Source: Neoechinorhynchus agilis (lineage: Eukaryota; Animalia; Acanthocephala). From it: a stretch of DNA of 64,000 nt. This document shows positions 24,606-63,756 of the stretch, piece by piece; within the stretch, counting starts at the first letter, position 1; every line of letters starts with the position of its first letter. Location of the stretch: contig CM121342.1 of NCBI GenBank assembly GCA_051530055.1, forward strand, positions 2,142,797-2,206,796. The letters run 5' to 3'. A program made the translations under genes and the position numbers. A model generated the notes under the pieces. The model made no database searches and was not told where the DNA came from. It saw only the letters and a list, made by a program, of their open reading frames with translations.

Positions 24606-25090
24606 CGACAATTACTTGACCAAGTCCTGCACCGCGGTACAAAACTACTCGAGTGTCTCGACGCCAAAGGGGACGAAATAAGGATTTCGACTACTGTATT
24701 TGTCTTTTTGCGATCCTCAGCGGCGACAATTACTTGACCAAATCCTGCACCGCGGTAAAAACTACTCGAGTGTCTCGACGCCAAAGGGGACGGAATAAAG
24801 ATTTCGAGTACTGTATTTGTTTTTTTGTGATCCTCAGCGGCGACAATTACTTGACCAAATCCTGCACCGCGGTACAAAACTACTCGAATGTCTCGACGCC
24901 AAAGGGGACGAAATAAGGATTTCGAGTACTGTATTTGTTTTTTTGTGATCCTCAGCGGCGACAATTACTTGACCAAATCCTGCGCCGCGGTAAAAACTAC
25001 TCGAGTGTCTCGACGCCAAAGGGGACGAAATAAGGATTTCGAATCCTGTATTTGCCTTTTTGCGATCCTCAGCGGCGGTTGCTGCCCCCC
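24606..25090 (-). repeat. Four tandem about 118-bp units derived partly from a CRE endonuclease fragment
   Basis: Units start at 24606, 24724, 24841 and 24959. The minus strand translates to GAATAAEDRK..KYSTRNPYFVPFGVETL, matching the REL region of the CRE copies. Confidence 0.8.
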
Positions 25091-33674: not shown

Positions 33675-34299
33675 TTGCTAAAAATCTAAAAGCTCACTTT
33701 AAATTTGAATAACAAGCCCTTTCGATGAAGAGATAAGGTGAGCGAACACACTAACTCGCGAACACTCACATATACACACATATATGAGTGTTTGAAACTC
33801 TCGCCGCATGAGCAACTTTTGGCGTTGTATGTTATTTTCGTCTAAGACGAGCGACTCTTGGTGGTGCTGTTGGTGTATGGAAATTTAAACTGTAAACTAA
33901 GGATGCACTTATCTGACACTCATGGCGTCCCATTTACAGGTATAAATCTTATTAAAGATTTGAGCCTAGAGTAGAACTGAAGTTGTCCGAGTTTAACAAT
34001 GCTTTAGAAAATACGAATTCAATTACAATTTAAGTCCTGGCGTTTCGGCAACATTTTATGATAACATAAACCCAAAGGAGCTTTTATTTCATCTTTACAC
34101 CAGTCGGGAGATGATTATCACTAGTTTCCACAATCGATTTATCATCTTTTATCAACAGAAATGTCGAAGAAGTGTCGTACGTCATTCAATCTTCTTTAGC
34201 ATTACAATAAAACGTTTATTTTTGTTCATGTACTCGATCACAATTTAAAATCCTTCCTCTGACTGGTTCAGCCATTGACGGTATTATATATCGGAAGCT

Positions 34300-35530
34300 C
34301 GCAATTTTGTCTCCTGTTGAAACACAGCGATTCATACCATCCACTCTGACAACACAAATGACCCGTCCTTGGCCATGTCCCCCTAACCTCAATCATAAAA
34401 TATTACCTAACTTCGACAATACCAAAGAAATTAATTCGAATATTCAACCGTGGCCCACCATTGATAACCCCCATCTTGAAACTCCATCAAAATCAAACAT
34501 CTAAGACCCATCGCAAAAAATCCCTTGAGTTTCCCCGTCTAAAAATGTAATATATCACAAAACATGATGTGGCAATTCAATATAGTGGCTTGCCGTCAAA
34601 GACTCTCTTGGTATACTCAGCCCTGATTTCTTCCCAAATTTGTTCTCTTCTGAACTGATACATGTCCTGGAATCTATCAATCAGAAACTCTGCCTTGACT
34701 CAATTTACAATCATTGTTCCATTTTAGACTCATTAAGACTTCTGTCAACTCTCCTGTACTCCCCTTAGTTTCGTCATACGAAGTACTACAACATCTCAAA
34801 GAAATTACCCCGAAGTTCGTCCTCTCCATTCGAAATCCCAAACTAAGCTCTTCGCGACATCATCCCCGAACTCATAGAACATCTTACCCACATTATAAAC
34901 CACGGCTTCTTACATGGCATCTACCCCTCATGCCTGAAAACTGCTAAAGTTATCCTTGTTCCAAAAAAAGGACTTCCTATTTCAGCCGAATCATTCCGTC
35001 CAATATCCATTTTACCCGCTCTTTCAAAAATCATCGAACAATGTTTTAAATCTCGCCTTCTTTCACTTCTCAACGATAAGTGGTCGTCCGTGCAACACGT
35101 CACCCTTCTCATTCACTGGATTTATCGAAAGCATTCGACTCTTCAGACTATTCACTATTTCTTCAGGCCTGTTCTGATTTCGGTCTAAACTCGTGACAGA
35201 TCTACTGGCTGTCTTCTTATCTTCAAAATCGCCAACAAGACATTCACTGCCAGGCTACCTCGTCGATCAGAATATCCCTCACAAAATGCGTACCTGAAGG
35301 TGCCGTCCTGTAACCACTTTTGAATGTTTTCTTAAACGACCTTCAATCCCTCTCATCTCACTCTAAACTCTTCTTATACGCTAACGATATCACCCTCATC
35401 ACAAAATCAACCTCCCACCTTTCTCCCTCTCGTTAACATCAAAAGCAGTCATCCACGTCAATGATTTCTTGCACCAATCACAAACTACCTGAACTTCTCT
35501 AATTGCTTCGAGTTCATCTCCTTAGTCTAC
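34300..35530 (+). mobile_element. Degenerate CR1/L2-like LINE RT fragment
   Basis: GIYPSCLKTAKVILVPKKG...FRPISILPALSKIIE plus decayed QG and YADD equivalents; similar to 56240-58273. Confidence 0.75.
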
Positions 35531-35538
35531 CGGAAAAC

Positions 35539-35579
35539 AATGATTAATGAGGCGAGGTTTCCTCGCGAAATATTTCATT
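35539..35579 (+). ncRNA. Degenerate hammerhead copy (family B)
   Basis: AATGA ttaatga g GCGAGG ttt CCTCGC GAA ATAT t TCATT aaataaa. Perfect 5-bp stem I and 6-bp stem II, but the core is mutated from CTGANGA to TTAATGA. Confidence 0.6.
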
Positions 35580-36091
35580 AAATAAAATGATTTCTAAGTG
35601 GGATTATCTTCACCACAAATCAAAACATAATTATATCTGTCAAATCAAAATTTGCCATCTTGTCGCTCCTAAACTGTGACACTCTGAAAATTCCTCGATT
35701 TATATTTTCTCAGTGAGCTCAAAAATTGTATTTTTTAAAGAATATCTTTTTGTTAAGCAGCAAAGTCAAAAATGTGGCTTGTTGTTTCTGCAATTTAAGT
35801 GCCTTGTGACTCATAGCTGATCAATCTTTTTTACAATATGAAATCCATCATCCATCCCTTTTTATGCCCCCATAGGCTAAAGATTATTAAACCCTAACTG
35901 GGACAACATAAATCTTTCGACTTAATAAAATTCATTAGAATTCTAAGCGAAATCAAAAACATACACGGCAAACTGCTTAATGAAGCGCACGCAGAGGACA
36001 TTAGGGAACTTATAAATTAATTAATATTTCCCGAAATCGCATTTCGATTCGTACGCACTACGAACTTATATCAATTTCAAATCTGCACTAT

Positions 36092-37530: not shown

Positions 37531-38459
37531 TGCCTGTATACAATTGATCCAGGAGACATGAAGATTGGAGAAAGATATTGTTCTAGAAAAACCTAAAAAA
37601 TCGTGATCTTCTTTACTTGAATTAAAACAAGAATTTAATTGAATTCAGAACGCCAGAAAATTCTTTGTAGCTTTCACTATCATTTATCTAGATGCCACGA
37701 GAAGAATAGTAGTTAATCCCTGGGGATTAGCCTGAAGGCGACGGTGCTTGAGGGGAAATGATCGCCATTAGCGGATGCGAAAATAAAGACGACGCCGTAT
37801 TGTGTGTATCACGGAAATAAACGATTAAGAAGGACCGATGCTCACTGTTACTCATTGTGTGTGTTTTCCTTTCCCAAACTAGAAAATATATCCCTGACTC
37901 CCATGCATTCTTCGAACCACCACTAAGACAAACGACGAAACAATGCTAAAAGTGGAGTATATCCGGCATTGCATGTCTAAAGACTTGTAGAACATGCAGA
38001 GAATAGTGGCTTCTATAAAGAACAATTTGTCTCCTAACCACAATAATTACACCTCCTTCCTTTGCCGCATCTTTAGCTCAATCAAAGCCGCTTCGATTTA
38101 ATGATTACGCGACATACTTTATGCTGAATAAATTTGTTTGATAATAAGATGAACGTGGGCAACTTTAAACCTTTTCGCGTTATACAAATTCATGCTGCGC
38201 CTCGCTCTCTAAAACGGTGGAAAGGAATGCATTAGAGCTAACATTTGCGCTTGATGTAAAGCCCTTATCTTTTACATTCAAGGTTGGTTTCCTCGAAACA
38301 AAAGCAGTCTATCTTTATTGGTAATTAAAACGACTTATTTCCCGGTGAGAGTAATAACCTGACAAATGATACGCATCGTTTGTCATCGTTGAGTTTGTAG
38401 ATTTTCTGGTTAAAGGATTTCATGAACCAATATCACCTAAAATATCTTGATATTTTTCT

Positions 38460-40064
38460 TTGTTTTGTAAGCAATCGCCCATATTGTATATGCCATAAGA
38501 AAAAAAACTTCTAAAGTTTACATTAACATAAAGTCAATTATTTTGATTTGGCTTACATAAATGTAAGGAACAATACTGAGTGATGAATTAAGGAAATTAT
38601 AACTAGATTAAAAAGTTTAAACGCGTTCTAAGTGTCGATGCGTATAGAGGAGAAATCGAACCAGGATAGACATTCAAAAGCGCTTTAAAATTTCAAAACT
38701 TGACCGATGCTGTCATTTTAGAGATTCGAACAATTGCGTTGATAATAAATCTAAGAATGCATTACGGTACGATTTCGGTGTAGAGCATTTTAGAATTGGT
38801 AGATATTGCAAATTTCATGATCTCTGTTTTCAAACTCTTATTTACTGCTTTCCCTTCCTGAAATATCTATACAAATAAACGTGGATATTTGAGAATAATT
38901 AAAATAAATTATTTTTCTAATATTATGTTCCTAAATAATTTTCTTGGATATCTGATAGCTTAATACTTAATATAGAAAAACTTATTTTTGTGTTATTCCT
39001 TCAACTTAAGCTTTCGCAATTTTCTAACAAAATAAAATTTTAAATATTATAGCATCCAAAGCGACTAAAAAGTGTGCTTATTACGTCATGCGAGAAAAGT
39101 GATCCATCAAGAACTTACATTAATCAAACAGCCTCTTTTAAATACTGAAGAGAAGTGCATAAATTTTGTGAGACAACGGTCATCTGTATCTCAAACTGTG
39201 ATTTGGAAATTAATGACATTAATCTTAAAGATACTTCAAGAATAAATTGTAAAACCAATCTAATCTCACATCGTTTTTAACACTAAATGCCATTATATGC
39301 GTTCGTTGATAACCATCAACAAATGTCACGAGGTCAAAGTAGTAAAGCGTTTTTCGAAGCACTGGAAGGCTATAAGCAACCAATGCTTCACGCTGGAGGA
39401 CACGTACCACAGGATCCTCTTTATAAAGTTTTTGATCTAGAGGACATATGTGAAGGTGTTGATAATATGGATGTGGCGAAGGAAGCTATCAAAAGGAGAA
39501 AATATTTATGACTATAATCCCAAGGCTCAAAGAAAATTTCATTGTCAAAATAATGAGAGAAGATCTAGGAAATACAACTCACAGTGACTTGGTAAAATAT
39601 ATTATGGGAAATGAAAAACGACGATTGGACATTTTAAACCTTGACCAAGATCTGTTAATAAGAATTAGTTTGGAATGGTTTCTTTGGTGAATATTCTTAA
39701 GAAAGATTTGAATGTATTCTAAAATATACAAGGATATAAGATTACAAGTAATGCAGAAAAACGGGGAAAGTCTATTTGGTTGTATGTTGAAGTATTGGGA
39801 AAGGATGGATTATCAGTCTCAAATCTTGAAGTGTTGTAGTCAGCAGGCTAGCTATTTTAAAAATCTAGAGAAGATTATGGCCAGCTAAGATGACGAATTT
39901 GGTTACACGGATTAACGCGGGAAATGACAAAGGCAGATATCAAGTGATTTTAGATCAATCAAACAATTTACTTGGCTTTTCAATGAACGAAGATGGAAAC
40001 TATCGTGATTTAAGAGTGCTATTTTTTATTCTATTAATTGCTCAACAACCAAACAGCAAGATTT
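38460..40064 (+). repeat. 1.6-kb AT-rich segment R; other copies at 42604-44225 (-) and 60265-61945 (+, interrupted and truncated)
   Basis: The same ORFs MPLYAFVDNHQQ.. and MVRVLQREALV.. occur in all three copies (MTIIPRLKENF.. in two), with near-identical flanking DNA. Confidence 0.9.
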
Positions 40065-40124
40065 CGGCATCGCTACTAGACATTCCTTCGATGTGGATTC
40101 ACATAGTCCGGGTGAAGCGTACAG

Positions 40125-40715
40125 GTATTTACAAATATTTGTACAAACTCGGTTTCGCCTATTCACCGAACCCAATGGTATTCGCTAAGATCCAAATCAT
40201 CGTTCTAACACACTTCATCTTATTTCTACCAGCAAGAATTTCGATGCACCCAGAAAACGCAGCGAACAGTGCAAGCAGTAAACAGACCAATATGAGAGCG
40301 GAAACGAAATCTTCACTAGCTACGAAACCCATTCCATGCACCGATCTAATTCCTGTAACATGGATCAATCTAGCCCATTGGAATTATTTTTTTGTAAAAA
40401 TATTTGTTTGAAAATTTCGTCAAAAGCTTCTACGTCAAGAAATGTTCGCAATTTGTACGAAGGGGCAATGAACTATCGAGCCACTTTTATATGGATCACA
40501 TCAAAGTCTCGTGAACAGTATTTAGGAAGAAATATAAGAGCATTTATTTTGTTCGGATTGAGTGACTGTTGTAATGCCAGATTATTTTTTAGCTGTTGAA
40601 TTAACGCCATAAAATCTTTTACGGATTGCGTATCGAAAAATTGGGATTTTTACCATATTCGACTGCAGAATGCATCTTAATTTGATGAGATGAATTTGAC
40701 GCGGCACGATTATCC
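40125..40715 (+). pseudogene. Deletion derivative of the homeobox locus: 5' fragment (like 50770-51020) fused to a segment like 52000-52350
   Basis: MHPENAANSASSKQTN..DLIPVTWIN then a switch to cattggaatt..aaaaatatttgttt, shared with 52000 onward. Confidence 0.75.
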
Positions 40716-42100: not shown

Positions 42101-44285
42101 TCTCCGGATGAATACTTCGAAATTAATCTTATACAAAGACAAGCTTTGAAAATCGAAAAAAGCTTTGTGAATTGGCTGAATAGGATCTAGTTAAGAATAT
42201 ACGATATCCACCCAAAACGCCTTAAAATTATCAGGACTAGTCTGAGCAACCCTAACCTACCTCCTTGTATCCAATTTGGTTTCCGACATGGCGCTGGTAG
42301 TTGATATGCAGGTAATCGATACCATCGTGAACCTGCATATTTACATCAGTGGGTCTTAGTTGTTCTCTATTTGGAAAACTTGGGCTATTTCCAGCCTTGC
42401 TTTTTATTTAAGAGGTCTCCCGGAACATAAACCTCTCTTCCTCGAAGCATTTTTCAAGCATATCAACTCTATACCTTCTACCTGGGCTTGTGAGCTTAGG
42501 AATTCATGCTTACAAAGGTTTCACAAATGAATTTACTAACTATTGTTCTACTATCCTATCTGTATCGCAGTTCCTTATTTCTCGTGGCGTTTAATGCTGA
42601 ATTAAATCTTGTTGTTGTTTGGTTGTTGAGCAATTAATAGAATAAAAAATAGCACTCTTAAATCACGATAGTTTCCATCTTCGTTCATTGAAAAGCCAAG
42701 TAAATTGTTTGATTGATCTAAAATCACTTGATATCTGCCTTTGTCATTTCCCGCGTTAATCCGTGTAACCAAATTCGTCATCTTAGCTGGCCATAATCTT
42801 CTCTAGATTTTTAAAATAGCTAGCCTGCTGACTGCAACACTTCAAGATTTGAGACTGATAATCCATCCTTTCCCAATACTTCAACATACAACCAAATAGA
42901 CTTTCCCCGTTTTTCTGCATTACTTGTAATCTTATATCCTTGTATATTTTAGAATACATTCAAATCTTTCTTAAGAATATTCACCAAAGAAACCATTCCA
43001 AACTAATTCTTATTAACAGATCTTGGTCAAGGTTTAAAATGTCCAATCGTCGTTTTTCATTTCCCATAATATATTTTACCAAGTCATTGTTAGTTGTATT
43101 TCCTAGATCTTCTCTCATTATTTTGACAATGAAATTTTCTTTGAGCCTTGGGATTATAGTCATAAATATTTTCTCCTTTTGATAGCTTCCTTCGCCACAT
43201 CCATATTATCAACACCTTCACATATATTTTATTCTTCACCTACCACTTCTTGCTGGTCCTCTAGATCAAAAACTTTATAAAGAGGATCCTGTGGTACGTG
43301 TCCTCCAGCGTGAAGCATTGGTTGCTTATAGCCTTCCAGTGCTTCGAAAAACGCTTTACTACTTTGACCTCGTGACATTTGTTGATGGTTATCAACGAAC
43401 GCATATAATGGCATTTAGTGTTAAAAACGATGTGAGATTAGATTGGTTTTACAATTTATTCTTGAAGTATCTTTAAGATTAATGTCATTAATTTCCAAAT
43501 CACAGTTTGAGATACAGATGACCGTTGTCTCACAAAATTTATGCACTTCTCTTCAGTATTTAAAAGAGGCTGTTTGATTAATGTAAGTTCTTGATGGATC
43601 ACTTTTCTCGCATGACGTAATAAGCACACTTTTTAGTCGCTTTGGATGCTATAATATTTAAAATTTTATTTTGTTAGAAAATTGCGAAAGCTTAAGTTGA
43701 AGGAATAACACAAAAATAAGTTTTTCTATATTAAGTATTAAGCTATCAGATATCCAAGAAAATTATTTAGGAACATAATATTAGAAAAATAATTTATTTT
43801 AATTATTCTCAAATATCCACGTTTATTTGTATAGATATTTCAGGAAGGGAAAGCAGTAAATAAGAGTTTGAAAACAGAGATCATGAAATTTGCAATATCT
43901 ACTAATTCTAAAATGCTCTACACCGAAATCGTACCTTAATGCATTCTTAGATTTATTATCAACGCAATTGTTCGAATCTCTAAAATGACAACATCGGTCA
44001 AGTTTTGAAATTTTAAAGCGCTTTTAAATGTCTATCCTGGTTCGATTTCTCCTCTATACGCATCGACACTTAGAACGCGTTTAAACTTTTTAATCTAGTT
44101 ATAATTTCCTTAATTCATCGCTCAGTGTTGTTCCTTACATTTATGTAAGCCAAATCAAAATAATTGACTTTATGTTAATGTAAACTTTAGAAGTTTTTTT
44201 TCTTATGGCATATACAATATGGGCGATATATATAAAAATATCCAAGATTCTTTGTTCCAATCGTACATTCATTGAATATTTGGTT

Positions 44286-47247
44286 ACTTTTCTTTACATT
44301 CACCACCTCCCACCAAATTCCAGCTTTTGTCCTTCCTCGACCGTCGCCATCACGCTGGCAGCATTGCCCCGTTGTACTGCCAGCGAGATATTTTGTCGAA
44401 GAAATATGCCTGCTCTTGAGTCTCCGGTTGCCTCTCTCAATTTCTTCGAGAGATCCTTGAGCAGAGAGAGTGCCGAGCTGCCGAGCGCTCCATACGTCTC
44501 TACCCCAAAGGGGACAAAATAGTGAGCCCTCGATAGCTGCATATATTTTCGTACCTTCCTCCCTTCCGCTGCACTGGCGGCACCACCGGCGATTTCGAGG
44601 GAGTAGGGGATGTTGCTGGCTGCGAGGGTGTCCACACACGTGGCGTCCCAGAGAAGGCATTTGCCCTCCCGCCACGGGAAGACCGAAATTCCATCGGACC
44701 TACGGCCGTCTAGTCTGCAGAGGTGGGCGGGTTCCAGGATGTTCGGGAAGTTCGCCGTTCTCAACGCCCGAGAAATTACGTTATTGATTTCAGAATGGCG
44801 TGAAAACCTTCCTGCTGACCTTCTGCAGACGAGACCGTGTCGCCCGAAAGCATCAACCAAAGACCCACATCGACAGCGATGGGGCGTGCATATCGGGAGA
44901 CCGAGTCTTGAGGATACTGCGATCCTCGTCACCTCGTCAGTAAGAAGAGTTCCCACAGATGCCAGAGGAACAGCCTCCAACCACGCCCCAGATTCTCGTG
45001 TTGAAACTGCCAACAGTCTAGCTCGGACGACCCCATCGCGAGAACCTGAAAGAAGAGAGCTGTGAGCTCTCGCGACAAGAGGTCCGTCCCAGATCGACTG
45101 TCTGAGGCCATTCACGGGAACTTGGTTAGCGCCTGTCTGCTGGCACCATTCCTCAACCGCCACCACGAAATCCCGGTCAAGACAAAACTTTTCTTTCAAA
45201 ATGTTCTTCGAGACTGGTAGGCTCCCCTCAAACGATCCAAGAAAGGCCGGCAAAGCAAGGTCGACTAGTGCCCGAATTACCAATCCCCCAGATGACACAG
45301 GCAAAGAAGCTTGTCGCCACGCCTCATCTGAGAGCTGGACATTTAAAATACGCTCGAGGCAAGCCCTCACCTTATTGTCCAGCTTTGCCAATCCTTCTTT
45401 GTGTTTGAAAAATGTTGCTGTGCGAACCTTGTACAATAATTTGGGGATGAAGAGCGCGTTCTTTATGAGAAACAAGGCTTCATGAGCAGAGAGAGCGCAC
45501 ACCCTATCGCACAGCAACGAAAGTTTCGGTATGATATGGCCGATCTCATCTTCCACATTTGAATCGAAGACACAACTGCCCAAGAGGCTGAGTTGTTCCC
45601 GAGTCACGAGTTTCAGACCTGGAGCTACGGCCTCGAACCCAGCCATTAGTTCTTTGACTTTAGCGGCGTCTCCAATATTCAGTACAAGGAGCTCACATTT
45701 TCCAGCATTAAGCTCAATGCCCATCTTCGAGGTCTCCCTAATCAGCGTCTCCAAATCGCGCAGTACAACGGAGGGATCACCTCCGAGCGTAGCGTCATCC
45801 AAGTACCAGGCGTTGAAGCTGGAATGGAGAGAATGCGCTATTGGGTTTACTGTTAGGGAGAATCCGATTGGACCGAGGGGATCTCCTTGCTGCACTCCTC
45901 TTTCGGACCAAATGAGGTGGTCTTCGAAAAGCAAAGGAATCGCCGTCCCGTAGGCATTGAGAAAATACTGGAAGGCTTCTGGTGCGTGATCCCTAATTGC
46001 GCGGAACATGCTTTCTCTATTAAGAGAGTTAAAGGCGTTCCGAAAATCGCACTTAAGAATCACGCACGGCGCTGAGCTACTCGTAGCAAAGTTTCGGAGC
46101 GAGTGGACGATAGCTTCCGCCCCGCAGGATGTGCAGCAGCCCAGTTGGAGTGGACGAAGTTGCTGCCCGGTTTTCTCTGTAATACGTTTGCAGAGAATTT
46201 TTCCTGCAAGTCGGCGTATCGTCGAAGATACGGCGATGGGACGAATCCCACCTTCTTTTTTTGTGAGAGCACATAATGATGCTCCGAAAAATAGGTCTTT
46301 TGCAACGGGGTTCAGGTCCTCTCCAGTCAGGCGGTCGACTATTCGAGAAAGCGCACTTTCTAGAGAGAGCTGCTTCACCAGTTGAAAAGGACATCATGTC
46401 CTTTAAGTGCTGAGGCCTTAGTCCGTCAAGCCCGTGACCCGAACCATTTGCAAAAGTTGAGATGGCCTTTTTCATCTCTGAAATTTGAGTGGGCGTCCTG
46501 TCCTGAATGGGAGGAGATGGAATTTCAAAGCTTCCGCTACTACATGGGTGCTTCGACCGGAGTATTTGTAGCGTCTCGCTGTCTCCTTTTGCGAAACTGT
46601 CGGAGGATGACAATAACCGAACAGCCCCCCGAACATCCCCGTCCGCAAGCTTCGAAGAGACACGCTCAGTCAGTGATCGCTTTGAAAAACGGCAGCGATA
46701 CTCTTCCTTCGTGCGTCCCTTAGAAACCTCGCGGAGATTCCTTTCAAAATTTTTAAATATTTGTTCAAAGGAATCTAACCTTTCCTTGATTGTTGATGTC
46801 AAAGACACCCGAGAATCACCGCTGGTGCAGAGGACTAAGCGCGGGAAAGCGAAGAGCCGTGTCCATGAAGGCGCACAGTTCGTTTGCAGGCAATCATTGA
46901 GCAATCCCGTAAATGCTTTGGCGACCAGATATCGCGCGCCTTTGGGGATCCGTTTCAGGACGTTCCTGGGCAGAAACCGCACGATATCAGGTATCGAAAT
47001 AGAATCAGTGGTGATCTGAGGGGTCTCAGGCACGAACGGTTCGGTTAATTGTGGTGGAGAACCAGACCCACTACAGCGGAGATCTCGGGGACCATGGACA
47101 AACAAAACCCCCATATTTGTTAATTTAAAAAACTTACCGCAAACCGGACACAAACCAGTAGAGACGCGTGGGAGCCCGGCAGCGTTGGTCTTCTCAGATT
47201 GCACGTGATCGATAAGTAGCTCGTTCAAATTATCTGCGTCACCAGCG
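44286..47247 (-). mobile_element. CRE-like retrotransposon copy D, 5'-truncated, one frameshift
   Basis: ORFs 46077-47255 and 44300-46378 join through a frameshift in a (CT)n run near 46365. All RT and REL motifs are present but RPDG is changed to RSDG. AACCA occurs at both ends (44281-85, 47248-52). Confidence 0.9.
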
Positions 47248-47944
47248 TGGTTCATGAAATCCTTTAACCAGAAAATCTACAAACTCAACGATGACAAACG
47301 ATGCGTATCATTTGTCAGGTTATTACTCTCACCGGGAAATAAGTCGTTTTAATTACCAATAAAGATAGACTGCTTTTGTTTCGAGGAAACCAACCTTGAA
47401 TGTAAAAGATAAGGGCTTTACATCAAGCGCAAATGTTAGCTCTAATGCATTCCTTTCCACCGTTTTAGAGAGCGAGGCGCAGCATGAATTTGTATAACGC
47501 GAAAAGGTTTAAAGTTGCCCACGTTCATCTTATTATCAAACAAATTTATTCAGCATAAAGTATGTCGCGTAATCATTAAATCGAAGCGGCTTTGATTGAG
47601 CTAAAGATGCGGCAAAGGAAGGAGGTGTAATTATTGTGGTTAGGAGACAAATTGTTCTTTATAGAAGCCACTATTCTCTGCATGTTCTACAAGTCTTTAG
47701 ACATGCAATGCCGGATATACTCCACTTTTAGCATTGTTTCGTCGTTTGTCTTAGTGGTGGTTCGAAGAATGCATGGGAGTCAGGGATATATTTTCTAGTT
47801 TGGGAAAGGAAAACACACACAATGAGTAACAGTGAGCATCGGTCCTTCTTAATCGTTTATTTCCGTGATACACACAATACGGCGTCGTCTTTATTTTCGC
47901 ATCCGCTAATGGACATCAGATTTTAGTCTTCTAGGTAGGAATGG

Positions 47945-48912
47945 TTATCGAACGGCATACAACCTTGCGACCAGTTTCTGATCTCTTTCTAGACATTTCA
48001 TTGTATCCAAACAGTTGTTAAAATAATCGGATGAAGCGAATATATCGAGGAAAAGAAAGTTTAAAAGTGCCCATAATTCATGAAGATTATTTAGTAAAGG
48101 AGTACCGATAAGAAGTCGATTTGAAGATTTGAGGGTTCTTACAGCCTTTGAGAATTTAGTGTCTTCATTTTTGATCCTGTGAGCTTCATCGATGATTAGA
48201 TATCTCCACGCGAATTTCTTTAGATGGCATCGCTCGGATAGAACAGTTTCGTATATAGTTGCAATAGCGTCCCATTTATGCGGATGAGCAAGAATAGTTT
48301 TCTTTAGAATCAAAGCTCGTTCATCTTTGTATCCGACAAGACATACGACATTTAGTGACGGGGCCCATCGCATAAATTCGTACATCCAGTTCTGAAGAGT
48401 TGATTTCGGCACTTTAACGAGATGTGGACGACGTAATTTCCGGACGTGTTTCATGCATCCAAGCAAACTAATTGTCTGTTGGGTTTTCCATAAGCCCATT
48501 TAAACGGCTAGGATTCCATTGATACCACTGTCGTACAGACGAATCATCCAATTAAGACCGCGGATTTGGTAATCGCGCATTTGGCCATTTTTCACATCAA
48601 AAGGATTTTCATCAAAACGGCAGGATGAAAAATAATTGGCGTTCTTAGTACGTCCTCCGTCCACAGGAACATCTTCATTCCTCAATAATTCTTCGTCCTC
48701 TTGACGTTCGGTCCTTCTATGGCGATGATCAATGAACTTGGTTTGGGCACGTTTATCAGATCCGTGCTGGTCGTGGTTTATAAAATGAGCGAATATTTCG
48801 GTTTGTTTGAGAAGGCAATCGAATCGTTTTTGAACATCGTGTTTATCTTTATCAGACAGTTCTTCGTCCAATTCAGGGTTAAGGCGACGACGACCACGGG
48901 TACCTCCAGCGA
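47945..48912 (-). pseudogene. ISWI: ISWI/SMARCA5 (SNF2 family) pseudogene fragment, intronless
   Basis: [64 protein letters not shown]. Lesions: GILADE to GILAV*, Walker A MGLGKT to MGLWKT, truncation before the second helicase lobe. Confidence 0.9.
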
Positions 48913-49202
48913 CTTTATCTTACCGACTCCAAGGAAAGGCTGGCTTAGAATTTGTCATCAAAGCGCTCTGAAAACGTGAATATCATGATGCTAAAATTGC
49001 ATTTATGTGATAAATAATGCAACCCCTATTTTTAAACTAAGTTAATAAATTTATTTTAGCTTGATCTGAGCGCAAGATCAATTGTAAAACTAGCTAAGAA
49101 ATTGTGCTAACAATATAACGCCAGTTACTAAGAACTAAAGCCTCATTCACAATATATGGTCCGTATAATGAGGCTAAGTAAATTTCTGGAAATATCTCGA
49201 AA

Positions 49203-49898
49203 TCACCACTGCGGGTGATCCTTGATCTTCTATTATGAAGCCAGAGCGAAATTATATTCTCGCTTAACCCAGTTATCCGTGAAAGTACGGATTTGAAACA
49301 ATCATCAAAATGTGCGCATGAAGCCGTGTTTCGAGAATCTCCCTCTGGTCGGTTCGGTATTGGCGGAGGGACCGGATCGTAAGCGGGATCGCGGAAGACA
49401 ACTGAGTCGCATTCTCATGGTGCCTAGAAAATGGGTTGGACCCGTAGGATATTCCGATAACCAGCTGGTCGTCGTTTATTGTCTACGTAGTCATAAATCG
49501 GAAATTGACGATAAGTCAATTGGTTCGTTTATCCACGTTACAGGATCATCGTAACTATGCGTACGAGGCTGCGTTTCGAGAATCTCCTCCAATGAGTCTG
49601 GTATTGGCGGAATAATTGGATCGTAGGGTGGGATCGCAGAGGACAATTGAGTCGTATCGATGGTGCCTGGGAAAATGGTTGGAATCTGTAGGATATTCCG
49701 ATAACTGTACTGGTCGTCTTTTATTGCTTCAATGGGCCATAAATCGGAAGTTGACGATAAGTCCATTGGTTCGTTTATCCACGTTGCAGGAATTAGATCG
49801 GTGCCAACATTGGGTTCCGTAGCTAGTGAGGATTTCGTTTCTGCTCTCCCATTGGTCTGTTTACTGCGTGCACTGTTCGCTGCGTTTTCTGGGTGCAT
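49203..49898 (-). pseudogene. Truncated inverted copy of the homeobox/PxDLS gene
   Basis: Same N-terminus; TGG to TGA at 49491 directly after the second PIDLS; the downstream homeobox is present but frameshifted. Confidence 0.8.
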
Positions 49899-50896
49899 CG
49901 AAACTCTTGCTGGTAGAAATAAGATGAAGTGTGTTAGAACGATGATTTGGATCTTAGCGAATACCATTGGGTTCGGTGAATAGGCGAAACCGAGTTTGTA
50001 CAAATATTTGTAAATACCTGTACGGTTCAGCCGAACAAAATATTATTTGACGTCAAACAAAAAGCTTTCGCCTAAAGGCATTTGTAAATATTTGAGCACA
50101 AATATAATCAGTATTGATTTCGTTAGTATTTATTTATCTTCGAAGTCTATCGACCCCAGGATTATTGCTTGGTTCAGACGAGGATTAAACAATGATAGTT
50201 AATAAATATTTTCTTTATTTCTAAAAATAGAAAGAAATTATTACACTCATGTCAGAACCTTAAAAGACAAAAGGTACCTCTTTTTTAGGATATACTTTAG
50301 TCAAGGGACTAAATTATAAAAGTTACATGTTAAGATGAACTATCATTGTTTAGTTAAATTTAACAATATAATTGAGATCATCTTTTTATGCCTGGGATTA
50401 TTGTCTTCGGTGGGAAAGATCTTTTTTTGGTAGCTTTGCCACCAAGTATCGAATACATTAAAAAATTAATCTCAATCGTATTGTTAAAGGGAAGTAAACA
50501 ATGCTAGTTCATCTTAAGATGCGAATTTTATAAATTAGTCCCTAGAGTAAAGTATATCCGAAAAAAGAAGTATCTTTTATGTCTTTTAAGGTTCTAAAAT
50601 GAGTGTAATAATTTCTTTCTATTTTTAGAAATAAAGAAAATATTTATTAACTATCATTGTTTAATCCTCGTCTGAACCAAGCCATAATCCTGGAGTCGAT
50701 AAACTTCGAAGATAAACAAATATAAACGAAATCAATACTAGATTTTAAATAATATTTTGTTCAGCTGAACGGTACAGATATTTACAAATATTTGTACAAA
50801 CTCGGTTTCGCCTATTCACCGAACCCAATCGTATTCGCCAAGATCCAAATCATCGTTCTAACACACTTCATCTTATTTCTACCAGCAAGAATTTCG

Positions 50897-51598
50897 ATGC
50901 ACCCAGAAAACGCAGCGAACAGTGCAAGCAGTAAACAGACCAATGGGAGAGCAGAAACGAAATCCTCACTAGCTACGGAACCCAATGTTGGCACCGATCT
51001 AATTCCTGTAACGTGGATAAACGAACCAATGGACTTATCGTCAACATCCGATTTATGGCCCATTGAAGCAATAAACGACGACCAGTACAGTTATCGGAAT
51101 ATCCTACAGATTCCAACCATTTTCCCAGGCACCATCGATACGACTCAATTGTCCTCTGCGATCCCACTCTACGATCCAATTATTCCGCCAATACCAGACT
51201 CATTGGAGGAGATTCTCGAAACGCAGCCTCGTACGCATAGTTACGATGATCCTGTAACGTGGATAAACGAACCAATTGACTTATCGTCAATTTCCGATTT
51301 ATGGCCCATGGAAGCAATAAACGACGGCCAGTACAATTATCGGAATATCCTACAGATTCCAACCATTTTTCTAGGCACCGTGAATACGACTCAATTGTCC
51401 TCTGCGATCCCACTCTACGATCCAATTATTCTACCAATACCAGACTCATTGGAGGAGATTCTCGAAGCACAGCTTCGTACGCACAGTTGCGATGATTTGT
51501 TTCAAATCCGGGAACTTTCACGGATAACTGGATTGAGCGAGAATATAATTTCGCTCTGGCTTCATAATAGAAGATCAAGGATCACCCGGCAGTGGTGA
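50897..51598 (+). CDS. Divergent homeodomain protein (233 aa) with an 82-aa internal duplication and two PxDLS motifs
   Basis: C-terminus SLEEILEAQL..IRELSRITGLSENIISLWLHNRRSR fits homeodomain positions L16, E17, L34, L40, I45, W48, N51, R52, R53. Repeat starts at 51005 and 51251; PMDLS and PIDLS. Confidence 0.72.
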   Translation: MHPENAANSASSKQTNGRAETKSSLATEPNVGTDLIPVTWINEPMDLSSTSDLWPIEAINDDQYSYRNILQIPTIFPGTIDTTQLSSAIPLYDPIIPPIPDSLEEILETQPRTHSYDDPVTWINEPIDLSSISDLWPMEAINDGQYNYRNILQIPTIFLGTVNTTQLSSAIPLYDPIILPIPDSLEEILEAQLRTHSCDDLFQIRELSRITGLSENIISLWLHNRRSRITRQW

Positions 51599-52358
51599 TT
51601 TCGAGATATTTCCAGAAATTTACTTAGCCTCATTATACGGACCATATATTGTGAATGAGGCTTTAGTTCTTAGTAACTGGCGTTATATTGTTAGCACAAT
51701 TTCTTAGCTAGTTTTACAATTGATCTTGTGCTCAGATCAAGCTAAAATAAATTTATTAACTTAGTTTAAAAATAACTCCATTATTTATCACATAAATGCA
51801 ATTTTAGCATCATGATATTCACGTTCTTCAGAGCGCTTTGATGACAAATTCGAAGCCAACCTTTCCTTGAAGTGGGTAAGATATTCTTAAAATATGAAGA
51901 ACTCTTTCTTACAAAAATGACTGGTAAGGACCATCGCAGAGTCGTTGAAAGTTGCAGTGTATAAAAGTTAATGGAGGGCATAGAAATAAAGTGCGCGCAT
52001 TGGAATTACGTTGTCGGAAAAAATATTTGTTTAAAAATTTCGTTAAAAATTTATGCGCCATGAAATGTTCGCAATTTGTACGAAGATGAATAAAGGGGCA
52101 ATGAACTATCGAGCCACTTTTAAATGGATTACATCAAGGGTTCTTGAACAGTATTTTAGAAGAAATATAAGACCATATATTTTGTTCGGATTGAGTGACT
52201 GTTGTAAAGCCAGATTTTTTTAGCAGTTGAATTAATGCCATAAAATTTTTTACAGATCGCGATGACATTTCATATTGAAATTTTTGACATTTGCAAGGTT
52301 CAACTGCAGAATGCATTTTAATTTAATGAAATTAATCTGGTACAGCACGGTTATGCAC

Positions 52359-52431
52359 GGGGCTGTAGCTCAATTGGTAGAGCGCTCGCTTCGCATGCGA
52401 GAGGCACCGGGATCGACACCCGGCAGCTCCA
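52359..52431 (+). tRNA. tRNA-Ala (anticodon CGC)
   Basis: Cloverleaf; acceptor GGGGCTG/CAGCTCC with G3:U70; anticodon arm CTCGC-TTCGCAT-GCGAG; discriminator A. Confidence 0.92.
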
Positions 52432-55815: not shown

Positions 55816-55888
55816 GGGGCTGTAGCTCAGCTGGTAGAGCGCTCGCTTTGCATGCGAGAGGCACCGGGATCGACACCCGGCAGCTCCA
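55816..55888 (+). tRNA. tRNA-Ala (anticodon TGC)
   Basis: Same cloverleaf as 52359; loop TTTGCAT; differs only at the anticodon and two D-loop positions. Confidence 0.92.
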
Positions 55889-55921: not shown

Positions 55922-56141
55922 ACCCTCATTGCATTTCACTGCGCATTTAATGGACGGAATAGAACACCGGAATCTATGCATTTTTTTAATAAAGAACCGT
56001 GTCTCAGTGTTTTACAATAGCCTCCTACCCTCATTGCATTTCCGTAAAATTCACTGCGCATTTAATGGACGGAATAGAACACCGGAATCTATGCATTTTT
56101 TTAATAAAGAACCGTGTCTCAGTGTTTTACAATAGCCTCCT
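55922..56141 (+). repeat. Tandem duplication, about 105-115 bp, two copies
   Basis: accctcattgcattt..aatagcctcct starts at 55922 and at 56027. Confidence 0.9.
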
Positions 56142-56239
56142 CCCTAAACTAGATGAAATTTAAGTCATTTCATCTACTTTAAAAGCCCACGTATGGGATA
56201 ACCGCGATCATCACATCTACAATTTTATAAAATTGTTCC

Positions 56240-58273
56240 ACTCTAATATTTGCGCATTCCACTCTGACAACACAAATGACCCTTCCTTGGCCACTCAATC
56301 ATAAAAAATTCTCTAACTTCGGCAATTCCCAAGAAATTCATTAGGATCTCCAACCGCGACCCGCCATGGATAACCCCCACTTGAAACTTCATCAAAAGCA
56401 TTCTTCTAAGGCCCACCGCAATAACCACCCAGACTTTCCCCGTTTACAAATAGCAATAACTAAACAAAATACTTATCGCCCGCAAAAACTTTCTTTCCTC
56501 TAAAATTCGTTCAGGTGACAATTCAACATGGTTGCGGGCCGTGAAGGACTCTCTTGGTCTAATCCACCCGAATCAATTCCCTAATTTGACCTACATTGAA
56601 TTAACACAGGTTCTAGATTCCATTAACCAGAACCTCTGCTCTGACTCAATTTACAATCACTGCTCCACATCGGACACAACACAATCTCTCAAGCCCACAT
56701 CTGAAACCTTTGTCAACTCGCCATTACTCCCCTTAGTTTCGTCATACGAAGTACTACAGCACCTCAACAAATTACATCGAAATTCGTCCTCTTAATCAGA
56801 AATCCCAAACTGGGCACTAAGCTGAATCATCCATGAACTCATATACCCTCTAACCCTCATTATAAATCGTAGCTTTTATATGGCCTCTACCTCTCATGTC
56901 TGAAAACTACTAAAGTTATCCTTGTACCAAAAAAGGATATCCTATTTCCGCCGAATCATTCCGTACAATATCCATTCTACCCGCTCTGTCAAAAATCATC
57001 GAACAAATGTTTTAAATTTCGCCTTCTTTTCTCAACGAAAAGTTATCGCCCCTGCAATTCTGCTTCAGGTCCAAATATTCTGCAATCGATGTCCTACTCT
57101 GCATTTTATGACACGCTCCTGCGTAACCTGAACAATAATGTCTCCCACGTCAACCGGCATATTCAACTTGATTTATCAAAAGCATTCGACTCCGTGGACC
57201 TTTCACTCCTTCCCCGGACCTGCTCCGATTTTGGTCTCAACTTTTTGCAGATCCGCTGGCTCGAATATTATCTTCACAATCGCAAACAATAAATTCACTG
57301 CCGTTGTACTTGCTCTATCAGCCTATCCCTCACCAAAGGCGTCCCTCGAGATGCTGTACTGTCACCACTTTTCTTTAATATTTTCCTAAACGATCTCAAA
57401 CTTCTCTCACTCTAAACGCTTCTTATATGCCGACAATCTCAGCCTCATCACCCATTCGCCACCCCACTTCTCCCTCTCCTTAACCGTTAACGAAACTACA
57501 CACATAAAAGATTTCTGCACCAATCACAAACTCCACCTGAATTTCTCTAAATGCTTCGAAATCAACCGTTCATTCTCTCGCAACCCCACATCCTCCACTG
57601 AGCTTCTAAATGACATCCTGCGAGTAACCTCCCTAAGCATTCTGGTTCTCCAATTTCAATCAAATTTGAAATGGCACTGACATATCACTCTCTCTCAAGT
57701 TCAACACCTTTAAAATTTATCTCCTCAAACGCCTCCGGCATTTAGGAATCCCTTAACCCAATCTCTCCGCTTTCTTGAAATTCTTCATAAAACAGCATCC
57801 AAAATTTGCACAGCTGACTTCCCCCTCTCACCGAATGCCTTGATGCTATTTTCATAAAACAAACAAAACCTCTATCAACCCTACCACCGCAATTTCTTTC
57901 ACACATCGTCTCCATTTTCACACGAGCACAAAACTCGTAATCCTAATTCGTTTCATCCTCCCTCGACATCGCACCTCCCTCTACCTGCGCTCCTTTTTCA
58001 ACGTTGCCCAATCTTCTCGGATATCATAACTTGAAATAAACCTGAGGAAACACCAACCCCACAAGCGCTTCTGCAAACAATAACCACCAACTCCCACCAA
58101 AACGGGCATTCCAACCTGACCAGATATTGCCACACACACGGATTCGTAATTCACTCTAAAATCAATAGCCAGTTTCATTTTCCAATCAGAATTCGAGTGT
58201 TTGTGAGGAACCCAAGGTACATGGGTCCTGTTCTTTGTGCATTAACAAACAAACCAAACGTGTTATTATTATA
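56240..58273 (+). mobile_element. Degenerate CR1/L2-like LINE with intact 3' end
   Basis: KVILVPK, ISILPALSKII, LDLSKAFDSVD and LYAD motifs; 3' stem-loop and gtgttattattata tail. Confidence 0.78.
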
Positions 58274-58780: not shown

Positions 58781-59674
58781 CTTGTGTCAACGTCGAGATT
58801 GGAACTTGCCAAGAACCAAACAATGGAAAGGCACGACTTTTACAACTTTTGCAACACAAATGCTAAACCAAATCTTGAGCATCCGAATTCATGTGAAAAC
58901 CAGAACCAAATATCGAGATCAAATCTTACCTCTTGACCGTTCCGATATTGTCGTTGGCCAGGCACATTCAATTACAATGAAACACCTGCCAATATCCGGA
59001 GTATCGACTCCAATCACGGACGCGCTTTGCCGCAAAGTTCGTCCTCCTTTTGTTGAACCAAATATAAAAAATCACAGTCACAGTCGCATCCTAGGGCCCT
59101 CTTCAAAGAGGTTCAACGCCCTAAATCCTCCTTAGAATATTCTTTACTTGGTCAGTTATTAACCAAGGGGTATTCACACACTTCAATATTCTCGAGCCTT
59201 CTATGACGATTCAACGTAGTCCTCGTTTCTGAATCGAAATGTGTCCTATCTCGACCATATCGACTAATGATATTGTATTGCAAATCCAACATTTGATTAC
59301 ACGGTTCTCAAACTCGAGATTTATTCAATACTTCGGTGTCATTTTTAGAAGTTCGCAACACTGCTGAAACGTCCACGACTCTATCATGGACTATTGCCTC
59401 ATCGAGACGTCAAAGAATTAAATTATTAAAATCCGATTATAACAGAAGCTCAGGTCCATAGCAAATATAAAAAGGCGATACATCCTATCCTGAATTCTCG
59501 TCCCAGACCACCTTGCACCTTTTCTCTTTTTTGAACGTGAATGATTTCTCGGCAACTATATAGTTGTGTTATTTGAAGCTCGAGAAAAGACTTTTTCTTT
59601 TGCGAAAAAGTAATTTGCCCAGATCAACAAATCCGCGCATCGTTTCCGATTTTTTCTTGACCTCTATGAGTTAA

Positions 59675-60135
59675 TCGCCGTATTCCTCGTTAAATTTCAG
59701 GCTTCCCAATTCATCAATTAAACTTATCCAACCATCTCTATCTTCTTCGTCAACAGTTCCCGCACTTCGCTTTCGAATGTTCCTTGATCTCTGTGATTTA
59801 TGTTCGTAATCTTCGTCATTTTTCAGCCTTCATGATTCATCGATTAAACTGCCCCAAACACCTCTATCTACTTCATCTGCAATTCCGGTACTTCGTCTTC
59901 GAATGTTCCTTGATAACTTTGAGTTATCGCCGTTTTCTTCGTCATCTTTCTGCTTTCCCAATTCATCAATTAAACTTCCCGAACCATCTCTATCTACTTC
60001 ATCTGCAGTTCCGGCGCTTCGTGTTCGAATTTTTCTTGATATCTTTGAGTTATCGCCGTTTTCTTAAATTTCAGCTTTCCCATTTCATCAGTTGAACTTT
60101 CTTATTAACCGAACCATCTCTATCATTGTCAACTG
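59675..60135 (-). repeat. About 3.5 tandem 126-bp units encoding a 42-aa repeat, decayed
   Basis: ENGDNSKISRKIRTRSAGTADEVDRDGSGSLIDELGKQKDDE and variants; period 126 bp (59925 vs 60051); internal stop and a frameshift. Confidence 0.8.
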
Positions 60136-61944: not shown

Positions 61945-63756
61945 AATGGCTTCTCAGAGCCAATATTGACTTCATAGTGGGAGACTTCAATGATCCATCT
62001 TTTTACTCTTTAACCTATCCCTCTACTCCCTCTTTTCATAATCTCGCTTATAATACGAACTCGTTCTTAGATCTGATCATTTATAAGAGAAACCTCAATT
62101 TCTTGATTCAATTCGATCGTCAGGTGTCTCTTTTAGACCTGTCAGGGCATGATATCCTAATCTGGTCCTTTGGTCCTAACTTTACGCTACGCAAAACCTA
62201 TCACATATCCCCACTCAACGTTGTCTTTTTCCGCCTAGTTAATCAAAATCTTAACTCTCTAGTATTTAATCAAAATAAACCCTTATATGTCTTACCTTTC
62301 GTTAATAATGCTCTTAACAAGATAGTTAATATTTTTCTATTGCGTACGGTGACCTTATGAAAGTCGCCCTACGCTTTCTTGGACGCCAACTCTTTTTGGC
62401 AAAGAGGTCCGGTGATGATCATTAACCAGTCATTTCGGGGCTGCTCGCTGTCGACAGCAGTTACATCAGAGAGCTAATTTACTTGCCGTCTTGAAACCTT
62501 ATTCCTCAACCTGGTGGCACACTCTTCAAAAGAAGAGCAATCTTCCTTGGAAATCTAAAATAGCAGGCTGGCTTAAAGTTTCGTCGTTTGGGGATATATT
62601 AAATTCTATTTTTGAATTTCACTCTTCGGGTTCCCTCAAAGATATCCCTCCAACAATAATTTTTCGAAAAATGGCAAACAGAGTGGATTTGACTCTGGAT
62701 GATATTCTTGAGGTCTTGTCATATAATCCAAACTTGGCGTTTTCGAATTCCAGTTCTGGTACCAAAATTTTTAATTTACTAGCCCATGATAGTATCGTTC
62801 ACTTGGCCCGAATGATACTAAGCTGCTCTCCCTACGCTTGGCGAGAGATTAATGTCTCACGGCGTATTTTCATTATCAAAAATGGGCTAGTAAATTAAAA
62901 ATTTTGGTACCAGAACTGGAATTCGAAAACGCCAAGTTTGGATTATATGACAAGACCTCAAGAATATCATCCAGAGTCAAATCCACTCTGTTTGCCATTT
63001 TTTTCCGAAAAATTATTGTTGGAGGGATATCTTTGAGGGAACCCGAAGAGTGAAATTCAAAAATAGAATTTAATATATCCCCAAACGACGAAACTTTAAG
63101 CCAGCCTGCTATTTTAGATTTCCAAGGAAGATTGCTCTTCTTTTGAAGAGTGTGCCACCAGGTCGAGGAATAAGGTTTCAAGACGGCAAGTAAATTAGCT
63201 CTCTGATGTAACTGCTGTCGACAGCGAGCAGCCCCGAAATGACTGGTTAATGATTTGGTGAGAGGGACATCACCGGACCTCTTTGCCAAAAAGAGTTGGC
63301 GTCCAAGAAAGCGTAGAGAGCGACTTTCATAAGGTCGACGGAAGGTCCTCACCGTACGCAATAGAAAAATATTAGCTATCTTGTTAAGAGCATTATTAAC
63401 GAAAGGTAAGACATATAAGGGTTTATTTTGATTAAATACTAGAGAGTTAAGATTTTGATTAACTAGGCGGAAAAAGACAACGTTGAGTGGGGATATGTGA
63501 TAGGTTTTGCGTAGCGTAAAGTTAGGACCAAAGGACCAGATTAGGATATCATGCCCTGACAGGTCTAAAAGAGACACCTGACGATCGAATTGAATCAAGA
63601 AATTGAGGTTTCTCTTATAAATGATCAGATCTAAGAACGAGTTCGTATTATAAGCGAGATTATGAAAAGAGGGAGTAGAGGGATAGGTTAAAGAGTAAAA
63701 AGATGGATCATTGAAGTCTCCCACTATGAAGTCAATATTGGCTCTGAGAAGCCATT
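61945..63756. repeat. 1.8-kb palindrome of a LINE APE-end fragment, arms 61945-62787 and 62882-63756, 94-bp spacer
   Basis: Near-identical inverted arms encoding IVGDFND..PSF..LDLII..SGHD. An RT fragment (HGFQKGNSVHSAL) follows at about 63790-63930 on the + strand. Confidence 0.9.

Follow-up and report, generated by a model that had tools for sequence, protein, structure and literature searches.

We analysed a window of 64,000 nucleotides (nt) from the nuclear sequence CM121342.1 (16.4 Mb; assembly GCA_051530055.1, record positions 2142797-2206796) of the thorny-headed worm Neoechinorhynchus agilis (Acanthocephala), in which a short palindrome carries two head-to-head copies of a homeobox-derived gene. 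The assembly is a MaSuRCA hybrid of Oxford Nanopore (ONT) and Illumina reads from a pool of ~50 worms, with Hi-C scaffolding and a BRAKER annotation that used RNA-seq (PMC12690905). The right palindrome arm holds an intact, intronless open reading frame (ORF) of 233 amino acids (copy A), and the left arm holds an inverted and interrupted copy (copy B). Copies were sought by blastn with the right arm against the window joined to the locus of a further copy past its end (76 kb in all). This search placed four copies within 27 kb: a 5' stub (copy D), the inverted copy B, copy A, and a direct copy C at 65458-66749 in window-extended coordinates. The features are collected in the table.

The frame of copy A is open from 50792 to 51598 on the plus strand, which amounts to 268 codons from the preceding stop; at the base composition of the window, an open frame of this length would be expected by chance ~0.003 times per window. 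The protein of copy C is KAL7670151.1, annotated as a hypothetical protein and the sole other member of the 90% cluster of copy A, from which it differs by two residues and four additional N-terminal residues. Its gene lies at record positions 2208281-2209243 (window-extended 65485-66447), 14.6 kb downstream of copy A and past the window end. Specifically, the four extra residues come from a gene model that starts with a coding exon of 5 nt (ATGGA), followed by a GT-AG intron of 249 nt, which puts MEVS before the ORF methionine. The upstream ATG of this model is CTG in copy A, and the extra 5' exon seems to be an addition by ab initio prediction, not a conserved feature. No gene is called on the record for copy B, and a supplement of one paper lists no homeobox, CtBP or peptide entry.

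Table. Features of the palindrome, the gene copies and their flanks (window coordinates)
Feature	Position	Strand	Remarks
Copy D, 5' stub	40106-40368	+	upstream region and first 41 codons, to VTWIN; 92-94% identity to A, B and C
Copy D, 3' flank	40373-40713	+	79% to 51995-52354, 86% to copy C flank
Left palindrome arm	48916-50388	-	carries copy B
Copy B, remnant of helices 2-3	49212-49286	-	out of frame with B ORF; 97% identity to A
Copy B, divergent island	49287-49491	-	rest of unit 2 and helix 2; 78-85% identity to A
Copy B, open part	49491-49898	-	135 amino acids from ATG 49898; ends at TGA from a G>A change
Unique central spacer	50389-50458	.	70 nt
Right palindrome arm	50459-51883	+	carries copy A
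Copy A, intact intronless ORF	50897-51598 (stop included)	+	233 amino acids from ATG 50897; called gene at CM121342.1 2193693-2194394
Repeat unit 1	51004-51249	+	82 amino acids; PMDLS (51026-51040) and orphan copy of homeodomain helix 1 (SLEEILETQPRTHSYDD)
Repeat unit 2	51250-51495	+	82 amino acids; PIDLS (51272-51286); supplies helix 1 of the C-terminal homeodomain
Degenerate paired-like homeodomain	51446-51595	+	residues 184-233, homeodomain positions ~12-60; Pfam, phmmer, hhalign, AF2, Foldseek
AATAAA, possible polyadenylation signal	51746-51751	+	148 nt past copy A stop; motif match only
3' flank common to C and D	51884-52431	+	ends in tRNA-Ala(CGC) 52359-52431; 81-93% to copy C flank

Copy A contains an internal duplication of two 246-nt units that stand head to tail at 92.7% identity, with 18 substitutions and zero indels. 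Each unit encodes VTWINEP(M/I)DLSS, so that the protein carries two exact pentapeptides of the PxDLS type, PMDLS at residues 44-48 and PIDLS at residues 126-130, in a region with a predicted local distance difference test score (pLDDT) of ~30 in the AlphaFold2 (AF2) model. Elsewhere in the window the pattern P[ILVM]DLS has one unrelated match among 128,000 six-frame residues. An eh1-like stretch of the Groucho type, YSYRNIL, is a weak lead; the relaxed pattern has eight background matches and unit 2 fails it. The description of the ORF by a previous sequence-only reading of this DNA, as a protein grown from an 82-residue duplication with PMDLS, PIDLS and a second unit that supplies helix 1 of a homeodomain, was confirmed in every part.

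The N-terminal ~180 amino acids had no relative in an exhaustive HMMER/phmmer search of 1.84 billion representative proteins. A word-indexed search of 5.8 billion proteins, with the whole protein and then with residues 172-233, returned only the protein itself and no parent gene or orthologue. The full-length AF2 model has a mean pLDDT of 36 and is uninformative outside the C-terminus, and its Foldseek matches were not significant (top match the Bicoid homeodomain, E 2.7). The first ~180 residues are probably an orphan, disordered region with an 82-residue tandem repeat, and by these searches the gene is taxonomically restricted. The idea of a young lineage-specific family, as proposed in the sequence-only reading, agrees with the lack of relatives for the first 180 residues, with the multiple copies and with one inverted duplication; against it stands the neutral-like divergence among the copies described below.

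The C-terminus gave a different picture from the rest of the protein. PF00046 was the best Pfam match, at 16.6 bits (E 0.007) against a gathering cut-off of 22.9, and it covers profile positions 26-54 of 57, i.e. helices 2-3 only. Against PDB sequences, 25 of 25 phmmer matches were homeodomains (best E 0.004), with DUX4, Aristaless, Paired, Pax3, Prrx2 and Alx4 in the lead; the Aristaless alignment spans homeodomain positions 12-59 and covers helices 1-3 (query sleeileaqlrthscddlfqirelsritglseniislwlhnrrsritrq). The exhaustive search of 1.84 billion proteins yielded two non-self matches, both of them homeodomain strings hit by the C-terminus only, namely a DUX-type array translation (E 1.7e-8) and a multi-homeodomain protein (E 3.5e-4). 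With hhalign, the last 66 amino acids matched eight of these homeodomains at 96.8% probability over 46 columns, a value that is somewhat circular since the alignment was built from matches to the query. A single-sequence AF2 model of the last 76 amino acids has helices at 26-38, 43-54 and 58-74 (pLDDT 70-82 in helices 2-3, mean 63). Foldseek comparison of this model with PDB gave homeodomains for all of the top 50 matches (probability up to 0.99, TM score 0.65-0.73, root mean square deviation 2.0-2.6 Å), at E-values of at least 0.14 that are expected for so small a domain and leave confidence in the fold moderate only. The PF00046 check that had been proposed for this domain thus falls short of the gathering threshold, while sequence and fold matches in PDB are homeodomains throughout. 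On these sequence and model matches, the C-terminus is a real but degenerate homeodomain.

W48, L49, H50, N51 and R53 are present in copy A and the basic N-terminal arm is missing, as had been read from the sequence before. Within the recognition helix L49 replaces F and H50 replaces Q, and in the place of an arm with R or K at positions 2, 3 and 5 the preceding ten residues are YDPIILPIPD, without a basic residue. Tyr25 of unit 1 is Cys in unit 2, which is the unit that feeds the homeodomain, and the helix-1 loop reads RTHS(Y/C)DD against RTHYPD in the aligned Aristaless chain. The domain, which is too short and divergent for a class-level phylogeny, is paired-like (PRD class) by closest similarity. 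We infer, with good support from the matches listed above, that the ORF was derived from a paired-class homeobox gene. The earlier suggestion of a CUT-class relationship, based on H50, does not hold because there is no CUT domain: Pfam found none in the ORF at E up to 10, no CUT-class protein occurred among the sequence or fold matches, and the closest matches were all paired-like.

The palindrome itself has arms of ~1.45 kb that are 98-100% identical over most of their length and differ by a 54-nt indel at 50740, a ~205-nt island of 78-85% identity and inner ends at 82-94%. Besides the indel and the island, positions 51170 (T/C) and 51238 (T/A) are diagnostic of the copies. The ORF of copy B ends in ...WINEPIDLSSISDL (...PIDLSSISDL) and a stop, directly past the second PxDLS, and both the palindrome and this stop had been described correctly. 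The G>A that creates this stop is the first change in the divergent island, which bears 35 private substitutions, 29 of them transitions and 6 transversions, along with ~8 indel events. On both sides of the island, in unit 1 on the one side and in helix 3 and the 3' untranslated region (UTR) on the other, copy B is 98-100% identical to copy A, and LSRITGLSENIISLWLHNRRSRITR can still be read in another frame (frame 1) of copy B. Since unit-2-diagnostic bases are common to the island and copy A, the island is a true old copy of unit 2. Sequencing error as its cause was rejected by the 29:6 ratio of transitions to transversions and by the unit-2-diagnostic sites that match A. Copy B is a pseudogene in which conversion overwrote the edges and left the middle untouched. 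What the sequence-only reading took for a homeodomain-less twin is, in fact, a frameshifted pseudogene (through the G>A stop, the indels and the private substitutions) that retains its helix-3 coding DNA out of frame; this remnant in the left arm had been missed, as had the intact copy C beyond the window.

The private changes of the island are biased from AT to GC (12 A>G and 8 T>C versus 5 G>A and 4 C>T), which could reflect GC-biased conversion or an editing-like process. The polarity of this bias becomes uncertain if unit 1 served as the template for a conversion of unit 2 in A and C.

These data bear on a proposed regulatory role of the palindrome, in which the 135-residue product of the left arm would serve as a decoy for CtBP, while a hairpin RNA formed by palindrome read-through would regulate both copies. 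The left arm does keep an ATG-to-stop frame with both PxDLS motifs, and the arms are complementary enough to pair if co-transcribed. However, a point stop followed by many frameshifts and an island of 35 private substitutions is what decay leaves rather than a maintained short isoform, and copy B is not a called gene. Genes A and B stand head to head, with their ATGs at 49898 (-) and 50897 (+), and therefore their own transcripts run outward, each promoter driving away from the other arm, so that read-through does not cross the palindrome; a hairpin would need an unrelated transcript entering from outside. An Rfam scan of 47-53.5 kb found tRNA only, namely the flanking tRNA. We regard the decoy and hairpin model as very improbable.

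Similar observations speak to the quality of the assembly. Foldback or chimeric long reads, or uncollapsed haplotypes, might in principle have produced the palindrome or the extra copies, given a hybrid ONT and Illumina assembly from pooled DNA and several near-perfect palindromes within one 64-kb window; in addition, the ratio of indels to substitutions in the copy B island is rather high (~0.2), and consensus errors could account for a few of these indels. Arms made by a foldback read would be identical, though, and these arms differ by the 54-nt indel, the island of 78-85% identity with its 29:6 spectrum, and the inner ends (82-94%). Copies A and C have no homology beyond 50663 and 52429, and because it is bounded in this way A and C are not haplotigs of one locus. 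We regard an artefact, too, as very improbable.

Comparison of copies A and C revealed 99-100% identity over ~1.1 kb (50824-51923), while the flanks were 74-93% identical upstream and 81-93% downstream. Their 702-nt coding sequences differ by two nonsynonymous changes, whereas all 159 synonymous sites agree, and the 3' UTRs are almost identical. The same ~1.1-kb tract over the gene is 98-100% identical among the copies, whose flanks have drifted to 81-93%, and between A and B the identity is patchy, with 98-100% on both sides of the 78-85% island at 49287-49491. Purifying selection was considered as the cause of the A/C identity and rejected: selection on the protein cannot give this pattern, because the synonymous sites and the 3' UTR are alike as well and the flanks have diverged. 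The identity pattern argues well for recent gene conversion as the process that homogenises the copies.

The cluster grew by segmental duplication of a unit that comprises the gene, its 3' flank and the adjoining tRNA-Ala; one of these duplications was inverted, and at least two were direct. Since the flank of copy D matches the 3' flanks of A and C, ~1 kb of the gene has been deleted in D; the 5' fragment that the sequence-only reading placed at 40.1 kb is this stub. A degenerate tRNA-Ala stands at the matching place beside copy C (~11666-11738 in coordinates where the copy C gene is 10001-10963). An unrelated tRNA-Ala(UGC) occurs at 55816-55888, 3.4 kb beyond the tRNA-Ala(CGC). Amplification specifically by foldback, as had been proposed, is contradicted by the direct orientation of two of the three extra copies. 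The window also has two unrelated palindromes, and inverted duplication is therefore a habit of the region and not of this gene.

Multiple copies with sharp homology boundaries in a retroelement-rich region would also be seen if the 1.2-1.8-kb block were a transposon and the ORF a transposase-type helix-turn-helix protein, and Pfam gave a weak HTH_26 match in the ORF. Against this view, the best profile, sequence and fold matches are animal paired-like homeodomains, and Pfam found no transposase, integrase or reverse transcriptase domain in the ORF. Moreover, the block ends in ordinary flank and tRNA, as in a segmental duplication, without terminal repeats of its own, and all four copies are local within the 76 kb examined. 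Mobile element cargo is consequently as improbable an explanation as an assembly artefact.

To judge whether the protein is constrained, coding changes were counted by the Nei-Gojobori method and pooled after removal of double counting, which left 24 countable coding changes. Units 1 and 2 differ by 12.5 nonsynonymous and 5.5 synonymous changes, a ratio of nonsynonymous to synonymous rates (omega) of 0.65. The first 405 nt of A and B differ by four nonsynonymous and one synonymous change, A and C by two and zero, and the changes private to unit 2 of A comprise five nonsynonymous and one synonymous. Pooled, this gives 17.5 nonsynonymous to 6.5 synonymous changes, versus a neutral expectation of 18.5 to 5.5, and an omega of ~0.8. 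The probability of at least 17 nonsynonymous changes is 0.003 at an omega of 0.2, which is rejected, and 0.036 at an omega of 0.3, which is borderline, while an omega of 1 fits; the power of this test is low, and all countable changes lie outside helices 2-3. These counts argue against strong constraint on the protein and suggest that amino-acid changes accumulated near the neutral rate. Neutral divergence among the copies, which the sequence-only reading had named as evidence against its own model, is approximately what was found (omega ~0.8, with 0.2 or less rejected).

A Tajima relative-rate test of the long branch of unit 2 in B against the short branch of unit 2 in A was highly significant (P = 6e-6). 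Purifying selection was rejected as the reason for the short branch, since five of the six changes private to unit 2 of A are nonsynonymous. It is more likely that conversion by unit 1 overwrote part of unit 2 in A and C, or that the island of B is an old unconverted remnant.

Taken together, we favour the view, with a probability of roughly 0.55, that copies A and C evolve without protein-level constraint, as a decaying duplicate or at best a dispensable young gene. It is favoured because the changes are near neutral, the homeodomain has lost its arm and several core and contact residues, and the surroundings consist of retroelements, palindromes and a dead ISWI fragment. The locus would then be a decaying duplicate and possibly a retrocopy of a paired-class gene, as hinted at by the intronless state and the AATAAA at 51746, and the palindrome would have no regulatory purpose but would have arisen incidentally, in a region prone to palindromes. 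Even if the copies are nonfunctional, they offer a tidy small-scale case of patchy conversion, in which a dead copy has been partly renewed to the left and right of an island that conversion did not reach.

The competing explanation is that A and C are expressed and encode a functional young repressor, with DNA specificity altered by H50, recruitment of CtBP through PxDLS and possibly of Groucho through the eh1-like stretch, and with conversion spreading the working allele. Several observations weigh in its favour and against the unconstrained evolution that we prefer. The 233-codon frame is open in two copies, and units 1 and 2 have no indel where ~3.5 are predicted from the indel-to-substitution ratio of the B island (P ~0.03). 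The PxDLS motif, an exact match in each unit and rare in the window (the single unrelated match noted above), was kept in both units despite differences at 12 of 82 residues. W48, N51, R52 and R53 are kept together with a predicted three-helix fold, to which profile matches add support, and helices 2-3 hold no countable substitution, so that constraint there lies outside the reach of the selection test. Copy C was predicted by the BRAKER run of the genome authors, for which RNA-seq was used, and copy A is a called gene among those recorded for the NCBI assembly, where no accession is displayed. Finally, mammals have paired-like genes that evolve fast and can nevertheless function at high omega, the ETCHbox genes among them (PMC8208926), and pseudogenes and gene conversion are known to accompany such genes (PMC8208926, PMC4904359).

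On the other side of the balance, an omega of ~0.8 leaves no synonymous excess, the Pfam score is under the gathering threshold, and the domain has lost R5 with the entire basic arm and carries Y25C in the used unit, F49L and Q50H. The PxDLS match is post hoc, to one of hundreds of short motifs, and its two copies represent one event; the eh1-like match is weak, given the background matches and the failure of unit 2. No homologue in other organisms was found among the proteins searched (5.8 billion, and 1.84 billion representatives). We therefore hold a functional repressor to be possible but distinctly the less probable explanation. A fuller form of it is a little more doubtful again, namely that A and C are working genes for a new arm-less paired-like homeodomain repressor with tandem co-repressor motifs, amplified and homogenised like mammalian DUX and ETCHbox genes, in which the motif pair arose by an internal duplication that cut through the homeodomain. 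If the protein works, its disordered N-terminal part would present two PxDLS peptides to the co-repressor, and DNA binding by a homeodomain without minor-groove contacts would probably be weak or altered in specificity. Acanthocephala are known for heavy loss of regulatory genes (PMC12256650), and the losses noted in the group extend to microRNAs and conserved core genes. If the intact copies were expressed and bound DNA, they would be one of the rare cases in which the gain of a transcription factor has been documented in this group.

The left palindrome arm adjoins an ISWI/SNF2-type ATPase fragment at 47945-48871 (-), which matches Pfam SNF2-rel_dom at E 3e-50. An in-frame stop at 48500-48502 makes it read ...GILAV, stop, MGLWKT at the place of SNF2 motif I, where DEMGLGKT would be expected. 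The fragment looks like a dead gene fragment, although a 184-residue piece of it is a called gene on the record. Copy C and this neighbouring dead fragment both stand as recorded gene models, which calls for caution with the annotation.

The larger of the two unrelated palindromes (37759-40059 / 42612-47918) has arms 99-100% complementary and the stub D in its central spacer. Its right arm is split by a 3-kb retroelement with a reverse transcriptase (44228-47247; Pfam RVT_1), of which further copies exist just past the window (99.5%, 68041-69223 in extended coordinates, 1,183 nt aligned) and at 11479-13734 (92-95%). A third palindrome at 61945-63756 consists of the pairs 61945-62352/63349-63756 and 62667-62787/62882-63002, 100% complementary with a 94-nt spacer, and its ORFs of 182 and 304 amino acids had no Pfam match; it is either very young or a possible long-read foldback artefact. 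The window also contains three satellite-like tandem arrays at 29300-30680, 24606-25075 and 59674-60065, with periods of ~131-134, 117 and 126 nt, respectively. GC skew is strongly negative at 34000-36000 (-0.34) and 56000-58000 (-0.45). Both skewed stretches have in common direct repeats of 73-75% identity (34569-35321 and 56515-57372), and therefore represent an old duplicated C-rich segment.

Several known systems resemble parts of this locus. CtBP-dependent repressors of the PxDLS type include Drosophila Knirps and Brinker, adenovirus E1A, ZEB and TGIF. As in these proteins, exact P-M/I-D-L-S pentapeptides precede the DNA-binding domain of copy A, within a stretch that is probably disordered; the motif is, however, its sole resemblance to them, and CtBP recruitment by copy A is putative. 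The likeness of the homeodomain to Aristaless, Alx and Prrx lies in the LEE-L of helix 1, the RTH(Y) loop, the GL-E before helix 3 and W48/N51/R52/R53, whereas copy A differs from these in lacking the R2/R3/R5 arm, an OAR and a paired domain, and in having one additional loop residue, Y25C, L49 and H50. Ampliconic palindromes of primate sex chromosomes undergo arm-to-arm gene conversion over arms of tens to hundreds of kb. The N. agilis palindrome shares with them the inverted arms, the short spacer, the patchwise near-identity by conversion and a multi-copy gene, but its arms are 1.45 kb long, the gene in one arm is dead, and a direct copy 14.6 kb off also takes part in conversion.

The closest parallels for the gene itself are mammalian. 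DUX arrays (DUX4/D4Z4) have two complete homeodomains per unit and many head-to-tail units. Copy A has in common with DUX4/D4Z4 that a paired-like homeobox ORF without introns lies within repeated DNA whose units are homogenised, and DUX4 homeodomains are among its best sequence matches, e.g. ETGLPEDTISIWFQNRR versus RITGLSENIISLWLHNRR; unlike DUX, it has a single, partial homeodomain, and one of the four copies is inverted. The ETCHbox genes (LEUTX, ARGFX, DPRX, TPRX and mouse Obox/Crxos) are fast-evolving eutherian paired-class duplicates of CRX (PMC8208926, PMC4904359). The N. agilis gene and ETCHbox have in common restricted, divergent paired-like homeodomains, local tandem duplication, frequent pseudogenes, gene conversion and elevated dN/dS. 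In contrast, ETCHbox genes can be traced to CRX as their parent, their expression in embryos is documented and their homeodomains have all 60 residues, while the acanthocephalan gene lacks the N-terminal arm and has a spare helix 1 from its internal duplication. The DUX likeness reflects a common class and not orthology, and the locus is no orthologue of ETCHbox or DUX. If A and C are working genes, the locus would represent an independent invertebrate parallel to DUX and ETCHbox evolution in homogenised repeats.

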